Origin: Pocillopora damicornis
Taxonomy: Eukaryota
Direction of reading: 5' to 3'
NCBI RefSeq assembly: GCF_003704095.1
Contig: NW_020845038.1
Span: 62,001-126,000, forward strand
DNA length: 64,000 bases
This document shows, piece by piece, positions 8,392-9,408 of this stretch. The number at the start of each line of letters is the position of its first letter. Position 1 is the stretch's first letter. The position numbers and the translations under genes were made by a program. The notes below the pieces were generated by a model. That model was not told the DNA's origin. It searched no databases and saw nothing but the letters and a program-made list of their open reading frames with translations.

Positions 8392-9408
8392 ATGATGTCT
8401 TTTGGCGCCGAAGCTGACTTACACAGGAAGAGACGGAGAATATGCGAGGTCAAAGTGATTAGTCTCAGAGAACTTTGCAGGGCTGTGATTATAAAAAACA
8501 CAGGATTGCGACGACTTCGAAAAGCGCGTAAAAAACTGCCTCTGCCGCAACATTTAATTGACTTTTTAACATCGGATTTCAGCTTCCGAGAGTTCGAGGC
8601 ACAAAGCTTAAATCTCTCCAGAGATATGCGGGTCCATTGTATCTATCCAACTAGGAGTTTGTTGGATAATTCCAAGGTTCTGCTAAAGTGCATCAACGCC
8701 AAGACTTTCAATTCTTCAAGTTCTTCTCTTCTCCTTAAAAGATGGGCCGAAATTCGCCACAAGAACATCATGCGAGTGTTGGTTTTGTTCAGGGAACGAG
8801 AAACTATAGGGGTCGTCCTAGAGCCATTTTCACCGAGTCTCTACGATCTGGTCCACAAATATCGCAGGGCTGGGGTAAAATTTTCCGAGGAACTTTTGTG
8901 GAAGATGCTGCATCAAATCTGCGATGCCTTGTGGTATTTACAAAGATGTCAGATTGTGCACACGGAGATTCAAAGCAAGACGTTGTCTCTTTCGAAATCA
9001 GGAGATATTTTGCTTCACAATCTCCTTATTTACACTCCTAGTGAGACCGAGCTTAATGTATGCGTTGATGGTAAATATTCTTTTCACGGGATCTATGTTG
9101 CTCCGGAGAAAATTCGAGGAGAGAGATATTCGAGCAAACAAGACGCTTGGGCGCTGGGATGCGTTGCTTTCGAAATGGTCTTCTTGGAACCAGCGTTTCC
9201 GCTGCGACCGGGTGGAAATATTTTTGAAACTTTGAATAACATCGTTCATGGGGTTTCACCTACAACACTCAATGAAGCAGATAAAAACAGATCCGACACA
9301 GGGGATTTAATTCGTTCTTGTTTGATGCCCGATCCATGGTTGAGGCCATCGATCGAAGATCTATTTCATTTTACAAGAGAGCGAATGCGACAAACACGAC
9401 CAAATTAG
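8392..9408 (+). CDS. Intronless protein with an N-terminal SOCS box and a NEK-like protein-kinase-fold domain (predicted pseudokinase), 338 aa
   Basis: SLRELCRAVI…LPLPQHLIDFL matches the BC-box plus Cul5-box pattern. Kinase landmarks: VLLK, IRHKNIMRV, FSEELLWKMLHQICDALWYL, YVAPE, YSSKQDAWALGC, RPSIEDL. HRD is HTE, DFG is HNL and there is no Gly-rich loop. Confidence 0.85.
   Translation: MMSFGAEADLHRKRRRICEVKVISLRELCRAVIIKNTGLRRLRKARKKLPLPQHLIDFLTSDFSFREFEAQSLNLSRDMRVHCIYPTRSLLDNSKVLLKCINAKTFNSSSSSLLLKRWAEIRHKNIMRVLVLFRERETIGVVLEPFSPSLYDLVHKYRRAGVKFSEELLWKMLHQICDALWYLQRCQIVHTEIQSKTLSLSKSGDILLHNLLIYTPSETELNVCVDGKYSFHGIYVAPEKIRGERYSSKQDAWALGCVAFEMVFLEPAFPLRPGGNIFETLNNIVHGVSPTTLNEADKNRSDTGDLIRSCLMPDPWLRPSIEDLFHFTRERMRQTRPN

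Follow-up and report, generated by a model that had tools for sequence, protein, structure and literature searches.

A SOCS box N-terminal to a NEK-like pseudokinase in the coral Pocillopora damicornis: a conserved gene family and candidate Cullin-5 substrate receptor

Introduction

SOCS-box proteins are classed by their substrate-binding domain, which is an SH2, ankyrin, SPRY, WD40 or Rab domain or one of a few others. Here, a gene of the coral Pocillopora damicornis is described in which a SOCS box is followed by a kinase fold with degenerate catalytic motifs. The gene lies at positions 8392-9408 of the forward strand of a 64,000-nucleotide stretch of DNA (positions 62,001 to 126,000 of contig NW_020845038.1, assembly GCF_003704095.1), hereafter the window, to which coordinates refer unless a contig or locus is named. 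It is a real, expressed and conserved coral gene, and its product is weighed below as a candidate substrate receptor of a Cullin-5 ubiquitin ligase.

With ASB/SOCS receptors such as ASB7, ASB9 and SOCS2, the coral protein shares a BC box, an LPxP Cul5 box, a three-helix fold and predicted Elongin C contacts on the BC box. It differs in that its box is N-terminal, whereas theirs is C-terminal to the recognition domain, and in that a kinase fold takes the place of an ankyrin, SH2, SPRY, WD40 or GTPase domain; binding by the coral protein is, moreover, a prediction. Among kinases, NEK6 and NEK7 are the best match in both sequence and fold, and they resemble the coral protein in size, in a short N-terminal extension and in consisting of a lone kinase domain. 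However, identity to them is just ~20-30%, only the beta-3 lysine of the catalytic motifs is present in the coral protein, and its family forms a separate clade on a long stem and bears a SOCS box.

Two further systems are comparable in their logic. The Tribbles pseudokinases TRIB1-3 are adaptors for the COP1 ubiquitin ligase, and the parallel lies in the proposed mode of action, in which a dead kinase fold holds the substrate while a short module on the same chain recruits the ligase. Tribbles proteins are CAMK-like, engage COP1 and do so through a C-terminal peptide, whereas the coral protein is NEK-like and would engage Elongin BC-Cullin-5 through an N-terminal SOCS box. Tribbles chains were absent from the best PDB matches by sequence or fold, and the only shared homology seen was the kinase fold. 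ZYG11/ZER1 and LRR-1 are N-terminal VHL-box receptors of Cullin-2. These receptors likewise carry their Elongin BC-binding box N-terminal to the substrate-binding domain, but combine a Cul2 box with repeat domains, whereas the coral protein combines an LPxP Cul5-type box with a pseudokinase.

No paper describing an N-terminal SOCS box on a pseudokinase was found in the literature searched, whose coverage excluded most subscription journals, and the single coral paper mentioning a SOCS box concerns a SPRY-SOCS protein. The family sequences and their Pfam domains are already present in public databases. An architecture search across these databases, proposed in a preliminary description of this DNA made from the sequence by a model, returned an old cnidarian-mollusc family that is undescribed and unnamed in the literature searched.

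The SOCS box

The preliminary description had reported an uninterrupted frame of 338 codons, and this was confirmed: a single-exon open reading frame of 338 codons plus stop runs through 8392-9408 (+) of the window. In protein alignments, the orthologues begin at the second methionine of this frame. The coding features are given below, with the evidence for each in brackets; dN/dS is the ratio of nonsynonymous to synonymous substitution rates, pLDDT the predicted local confidence of an AlphaFold2 (AF2) model.

8392..9408, +: complete coding sequence in one exon, 338 residues plus stop (open reading frame; dN/dS 0.08-0.21)
8392..8454, +: basic N-terminal tail, residues 1-21, predicted disordered (pLDDT <50 at residues 1-15; variable among orthologues)
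8455..8571, +: SOCS box, residues 22-60, three helices (Pfam PF07525; genome scan; N-terminal profile against PDB; AF2)
8461..8490, +: BC box S24-L25-R-E-L-C29-R-A-V-I33, predicted Elongin C contact (conservation; complex model)
8536..8568, +: Cul5 box L49-P-L-P52-x-x-L55-x-x-F58-L59 (conservation; Pfam model match)
8572..8664, +: link into the N-lobe, residues 61-91, strands replacing the glycine-rich loop (dN/dS 0.03-0.11; NEK6 alignment; model)
8665..9369, +: NEK6/7-like kinase fold without catalytic motifs, residues 92-326 (Pfam Pkinase; NEK7 as best PDB match in sequence and fold)
8686..8688, +: K99, the beta-3 (VAIK) lysine, kept (no variation in orthologues or in either paralogue group)
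8959..8982, +: degenerate catalytic loop HTEIQSKT, against HRDIKPAN (alignment to active NEK6)
9019..9027, +: N210-L-L in place of DFG/DLG, Asp to Asn (NEK6 alignment; N210 invariant in orthologues)
9100..9108, +: retained APE motif, A237-P238-E239 (P238 and E239 invariant in 55 family members)

A BC box and an LPxP Cul5 box had been noticed in the letters at the N-terminus; both motifs were found there, within a Pfam SOCS_box (PF07525) match at residues 22-60 that scores 31.1 bits (E 2.8e-7) against a curated cut-off of 23.5 bits. In a six-frame PF07525 scan of the whole 234-Mb genome, 25 places exceeded the cut-off, one of them being this locus (C1673:70455-70571, window 8455-8571; 34.1 bits, E 1e-5 genome-wide). 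Since the locus is recovered at this E-value from an entire genome, the match is not a product of chance.

Both halves of the box conform to the known motifs. The BC box fits the consensus (S/T/P)LxxxCxxx-hydrophobic exactly; L25 is invariant in 22 orthologues and both paralogue groups, C29 is invariant in the orthologues, and across the family alignments L25, C29 and R30 show little or no variation. The Cul5 box fits LPxP followed by hydrophobic-xx-(F/Y)-L (L49-P-L-P52-Q-H-L55-I-D-F58-L59), and the alignment of this stretch extends up to position 39 of the 39 in the Pfam model. Across 25 diverse members neither L49 nor P52 varies, and P52 is unchanged in 55 as well.

In addition, the first 60 residues of eight family members, drawn from genomic loci, were built into an independent profile (A6). 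Against the complete set of PDB chains, this profile gave 13 matches at E up to 10, and the top 12 were all SOCS boxes, belonging to ASB7 (5.7e-5), ASB9, ASB8, SOCS2, SOCS1 and SOCS4, with the first ten at E <=1.4e-3. The profile aligned to the C-terminal boxes of these ASB/SOCS proteins. A single-sequence phmmer search of residues 15-73 against PDB returned zero SOCS-box chains, which were retrieved by the family profile alone. In the AF2 model, the box forms helices at residues 25-37, 39-48 and 53-61, with pLDDT 82-92. Taken together, profile and model evidence support residues 22-60 as a true SOCS box. Its position is the unusual feature: the box precedes the kinase fold, in the same order in all members of the family, and does not take the C-terminal place relative to the substrate-binding domain that is usual, although not strictly defining, for SOCS boxes.

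The kinase-like domain

Residues 92-326 match Pfam Pkinase at 79.8 bits, so that both profiles proposed for scanning, SOCS_box and Pkinase, found their domain. The best PDB match by sequence was NEK7 (E 1.8e-16), and the AF2 model (mean pLDDT 86.7; predicted template modelling score, pTM, 0.85), in which three helices at residues 25-61 lead to a kinase fold, had its best Foldseek match in NEK7 as well (2wqn, E 2.6e-17, TM score 0.81). Strands at 68-70 and 84-89 lie in the link region before the kinase fold. The high pTM suggests that the SOCS box is held in a fixed arrangement relative to the kinase fold. A look-up in the ESM Atlas gave generic kinase clusters only.

Alignment to active NEK6 proteins was used for the comparison of motifs, which is as follows.

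Glycine loop: GRGQFS in active NEK6, SRDMRVH in this protein
Alpha-C glutamate: Glu in active NEK6, Leu in this protein
Catalytic loop: HRDIKPAN in active NEK6, HTEIQSKT in this protein (HRD Arg and Asp and the catalytic Asn replaced)
DFG/DLG: DLG in active NEK6, N210-L-L in this protein
Beta-3 lysine: Lys in active NEK6, kept in this protein as K99
C-lobe: APE, DxWxLGC and the subdomain-XI Arg-Pro, kept in this protein

The comparison agrees with most of what had been read from the letters. The NEK-like domain indeed has no GxGxxG loop, the catalytic loop reads HTEIQSKT at 8959-8982, and the C-lobe residues said to be kept are present (A237-E239 of APE, D251xW253xLG256 and R318). The DFG motif is degenerate as claimed, but its register had been set one residue too early: the triplet aligned with DFG is N210-L211-L212 (9019-9027) and not H209-N210-L211, the "HNL" of the preliminary description. 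Among the canonical NEK catalytic motifs, the beta-3 lysine is the sole survivor; K99 is invariant in the orthologues and in both paralogue groups, and is retained in most of the family. By the usual definition, which is one of sequence, the protein is a pseudokinase.

Selection and transcription

Codon alignments of six coral orthologues gave an overall dN/dS of 0.08-0.21, well below 1, with dS up to saturation; this ratio had been named in advance as a check on the gene. By segment, dN/dS was 0.07-0.34 in the SOCS box (residues 22-60), 0.03-0.11 in residues 61-91, the tightest-constrained segment, and 0.07-0.19 in the kinase fold. The coral gene is under purifying selection and has retained a function.

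Transcription, likewise set as a check, was established from public RNA data. The gene stretch is present in ten runs recorded as RNA (nine polyA, one cDNA) from four studies, and polyA contigs of the four studies cover the gene. From 8222-8242 to ~11121 the contigs run colinear with the genome and show no joint, which corresponds to an unspliced transcript of ~2.9 kb; they give neither expression level nor exact transcript ends. In the same runs, three CT..AC joints, that is, spliced introns, occur in the upstream minus-strand gene, and the contigs are therefore derived from RNA rather than from contaminating DNA. The claim of an intronless gene beside a spliced neighbour is upheld by both observations.

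Family and age

A word-index search returned 21 proteins at 55-99% identity, one of them named, from the coral Oculina patagonica. Orthologues are present with an intact frame in ~20 corals, and a 99%-identical copy was found on a Tara metagenome scaffold. The same genome holds a paralogue (L002, C3622:106900-107826, minus strand), a single exon encoding 354 residues at 32% identity, which has the same architecture (SOCS_box 36 bits), another set of degenerate catalytic motifs and a conserved C-terminal tail, Y-x-G-x-x-I-x-x-L. Its group extends to further corals, including Montipora, and to the sea anemone Nematostella.

A full profile search added more than 20 clusters at 50% identity, with proteins of 308-460 residues that match from the SOCS box onward. 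The SOCS box of these clusters was confirmed by a purpose-built SOCS hidden Markov model and by Pfam, which matched 23 of 25 members (best E 6.4e-13). Named members come from Actinia tenebrosa, a second Nematostella gene (LOC5509730), the jellyfish Rhopilema esculentum and the limpets Patella vulgata and P. caerulea, and the range of the family covers Scleractinia, Actiniaria, Scyphozoa and Mollusca. The automatic database names of members are "Nek6-like", "Nek7-like", "Nek6/7-like" or "hypothetical protein". In the database searches made for the family, only catalytic NEK6/7 came up from vertebrates, and the family appears to be absent there. Long multi-kinase proteins that ranked high in the profile search (P0092, P0095, P0097 and P0098, a set including an oomycete and a trichomonad protein) have several kinase domains, carry no SOCS box and were rejected as members.

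In a quick maximum-likelihood tree, which leaves the sister relation unresolved, all 35 of 35 SOCS-box members form one clade (Shimodaira-Hasegawa-like approximate likelihood ratio test, 100; stem 1.66) outside the NEK6/7 clade. When 36 members were examined, none had a GxGxxG loop and none had the HRD and DFG aspartates together at the aligned positions; the different clades of the family retain different remnants of the catalytic motifs. Because all members belong to one clade and all have degenerate motifs, both the fusion and the catalytic loss predate the split of the family into clades. The range of taxa places both events, barring gene transfer, before the cnidarian-bilaterian divergence.

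The preliminary description had taken the lack of introns as a sign of a retroposed or young gene. A young origin is excluded on comparative grounds, because the taxon range is wide, synteny is conserved and dS is saturated; retroposition is possible solely as an ancient event. The coding sequence has just one exon in P. damicornis and in three other corals, Oculina among them; the same is true of the paralogue, a scyphozoan-type contig and one further clade. The Patella caerulea member (L014, 3001-5683) has three coding exons (residues 1-43, 44-102 and 103-308), the first intron interrupting the SOCS box after helix 2 and before the Cul5 box, and its kinase N-lobe is reduced further. Ancient retroposition and intron loss in cnidarians are both possible explanations; no parent gene of a putative retrocopy was identified.

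One sub-clade stands apart in its inserts (P0106, P0116, P0120, P0126, P0128, P0141-P0147 and P0204). At the site of the glycine loop, its members have a conserved histidine-rich insert, Y-N-F-x-F-P-N-H-x-H-H; a cysteine-containing insert follows the beta-3 strand, and the C-terminal tail is conserved. This sub-clade might bind metal.

Elongin C and Cullin-5

Elongin C and Cullin-5, which a Cullin-5 receptor would use, both have genes in this genome. The first exon of an Elongin C gene is found at L008 (C2182:248828-248932), and an exon at L021 matches Cullin-5 chains only (E 3.7e-15). For structure prediction with Elongin C, again a check proposed beforehand, the partner was a complete Elongin C (P0285) from a related coral transcriptome, retrieved with the first exon as query; its residues 24-122 were modelled with residues 14-72 of the SOCS-pseudokinase. 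The predicted complex reached a score of 0.62, whereas the highest of three controls stayed at 0.02. Of 78 solved complexes, 51 attained that mark, as did 2 of 108 mismatched pairs; in eukaryotes, the figures were 39 of 65 for solved pairs lacking a like complex and 2 of 126 for unrelated pairs. At least 85% of contacts are shared between runs, the partner pLDDT is 67 or more, and the lowest-error contacts join L25, R26, C29, R30, V32 and I33 of the BC box to Elongin C residues 83-122, its C-terminal helices. The model is best read as showing that the coral box resembles a functional SOCS box, not that it binds.

Several coral "proteins" in databases that resemble Elongin C (P0270-P0272, 96-130 residues) are exon 1 read through into the first intron by callers of the open-reading-frame type, and were set aside as partners. 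Such entries call for caution, since these gene callers have been run on eukaryotic contigs. A further observation concerns C4385, where a weak Skp1_POZ-type match (108196-108369) and a SOCS_box match (114899-115000) lie on the same strand ~6.5 kb apart; they may belong to one gene or be mere neighbours.

Proposed function and alternative explanations

With moderate confidence, the protein is proposed to be a Cullin-5 substrate receptor that uses its pseudokinase as the recognition module. The BC box (S24-I33) would dock onto Elongin C, the LPLP Cul5 box would recruit Cullin-5/Rbx2, and the dead kinase fold, held rigidly beside the box, would capture a protein for ubiquitination. Support for Elongin C binding comes from modelling; Cullin-5 recruitment, capture by the kinase fold and the nature of the substrate are inferred. 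Several observations count against this proposal. The N-terminal position of the box is unlike that in characterised SOCS-box receptors and puts in question whether Cullin-5 could reach a bound substrate. The first proline of LPLP (P50) is serine in a few coral orthologues. The retained K99, together with E192 at the position of the HRD aspartate (aspartate itself in some corals), leaves room for residual nucleotide binding or activity. Furthermore, solved complexes of SOCS boxes with Elongin BC exist, and the favourable complex model may reflect memory of them.

The proposal has to be weighed against a different use of the same parts, in which the protein serves chiefly as a scaffold or decoy, or regulates an active kinase or other NEK6/7 partner allosterically, and the box does no more than control the protein's stability or anchor it to Elongin B/C, without delivering a substrate. 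Many pseudokinases are allosteric, conservation is strong in the activation segment and in the C-lobe motifs (APE, DxWxLGC, RP), and ubiquitination by the SOCS-pseudokinase is a prediction, all of which would suit such a role. Against it, both halves of the SOCS box, including LPxP (L49 in 25 members, P52 in 55), are kept across cnidarians and molluscs, with which a dispensable Cullin recruitment is hard to reconcile, and a Cullin-5 gene is present in the genome; this explanation is considered rather unlikely. That the protein might instead be an atypical active kinase with relocated catalytic residues, phosphorylating targets of the ligase or being regulated by it, draws on the invariance of K99, the acidic residue at the HRD aspartate position, the conserved K196 nearby and the invariant N210 at the DFG position. 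The glycine-rich loop and the alpha-C glutamate are gone, however, the magnesium-binding asparagine is replaced in most members, and the aligned DFG aspartate occurs in no member, clade B having an aspartate one residue upstream. Moreover, clades keep differing remnants and the full motif set is found in 0 of 36 members, a pattern that reads as relaxed catalytic constraint on a conserved fold, and catalysis of this kind is judged very improbable.

The lack of introns amid intron-rich neighbours could also point to a non-functional retrocopy or a chance reading frame. This is refuted by the low dN/dS (0.08-0.21) at saturated dS, and an intact frame in ~20 corals and the paralogue, conserved synteny and polyA contigs from four studies stand against it as well, so that its probability is practically nil. 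A more specific form of the receptor proposal, regarded as quite unlikely as it stands, is that the family supplies a NEK7-shaped decoy on a Cullin-5 ligase, which would capture, for degradation, proteins that dock on NEK6/7 independently of catalysis. Its candidate targets would be activators of the NEK9 type or leucine-rich-repeat proteins of the NLR type, such as occur in the NLRP3-NEK7 complex.

Transcript ends and genomic surroundings

The RNA contigs extend the gene on both sides of the coding sequence, as follows.

8222..8391, +: 5' untranslated region (contigs from four RNA runs start at 8222-8242; depth zero in bin 7973-8156)
9409..11121, +: 3' untranslated region to the limit of the RNA contigs (contigs 8242-11121, 8222-10895 and 8236-10586)

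Upstream, the zero depth of bin 7973-8156 is common to all four RNA runs compared. Downstream, the contigs break near 11121 at a high-copy repeat, and the 3' end is for this reason a lower limit only; inspection of the sequence around the contig end gave no AATAAA near 11121, and the Oculina gene model extends ~3.3 kb beyond the stop codon. Over 11101-11284 and 11340-12000, the summed contig depth in the RNA runs reaches ~2,500-20,000, against 20-200 around, and numerous loose ends, inverted joints and skips follow the very high-copy element up to 12000. The element is probably a transposable-element or repeat cluster.

Within the 5' untranslated region, a block of ~70 nucleotides (8250-8320) is conserved at the nucleotide level in corals that are saturated at synonymous coding sites (L011, L012 and L013). 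It contains two overlapping upstream ATGs, at 8275 (26 codons) and 8288 (13 codons, starting MCKTG), and in some corals the second upstream frame has been joined to the main one by reading-frame callers, giving extensions that start MFKTG (P0006, P0017 and P0019). The block is a candidate for a conserved upstream open reading frame or a start-site element.

The upstream neighbour, at ~3760-7919 on the minus strand, is a MYST-family histone acetyltransferase gene (Tudor-knot, zf-MYST and MOZ_SAS domains) with spliced introns. It stands head-to-head with the SOCS-pseudokinase gene, with ~300 bp between the ends of their RNA contigs, and a shared bidirectional promoter is possible. The same neighbour is found in Oculina (L012) and in another coral (L013), which marks the locus as stable.

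Implications

If the proposal is correct, a conserved class of pseudokinases with an N-terminal box would constitute a new kind of Cullin-5 receptor, and a second, independent case, besides Tribbles, in which a dead kinase fold acts as adaptor for a ubiquitin ligase. As Nematostella carries the family, it is experimentally tractable. The mislabelling of members as Nek6/7-like kinases in annotations affects kinome counts and the reading of coral expression data. Should the decoy form of the proposal hold, corals and other animals whose NLR repertoires are very large would possess a turnover switch dedicated to mitotic or innate-immune signalling.

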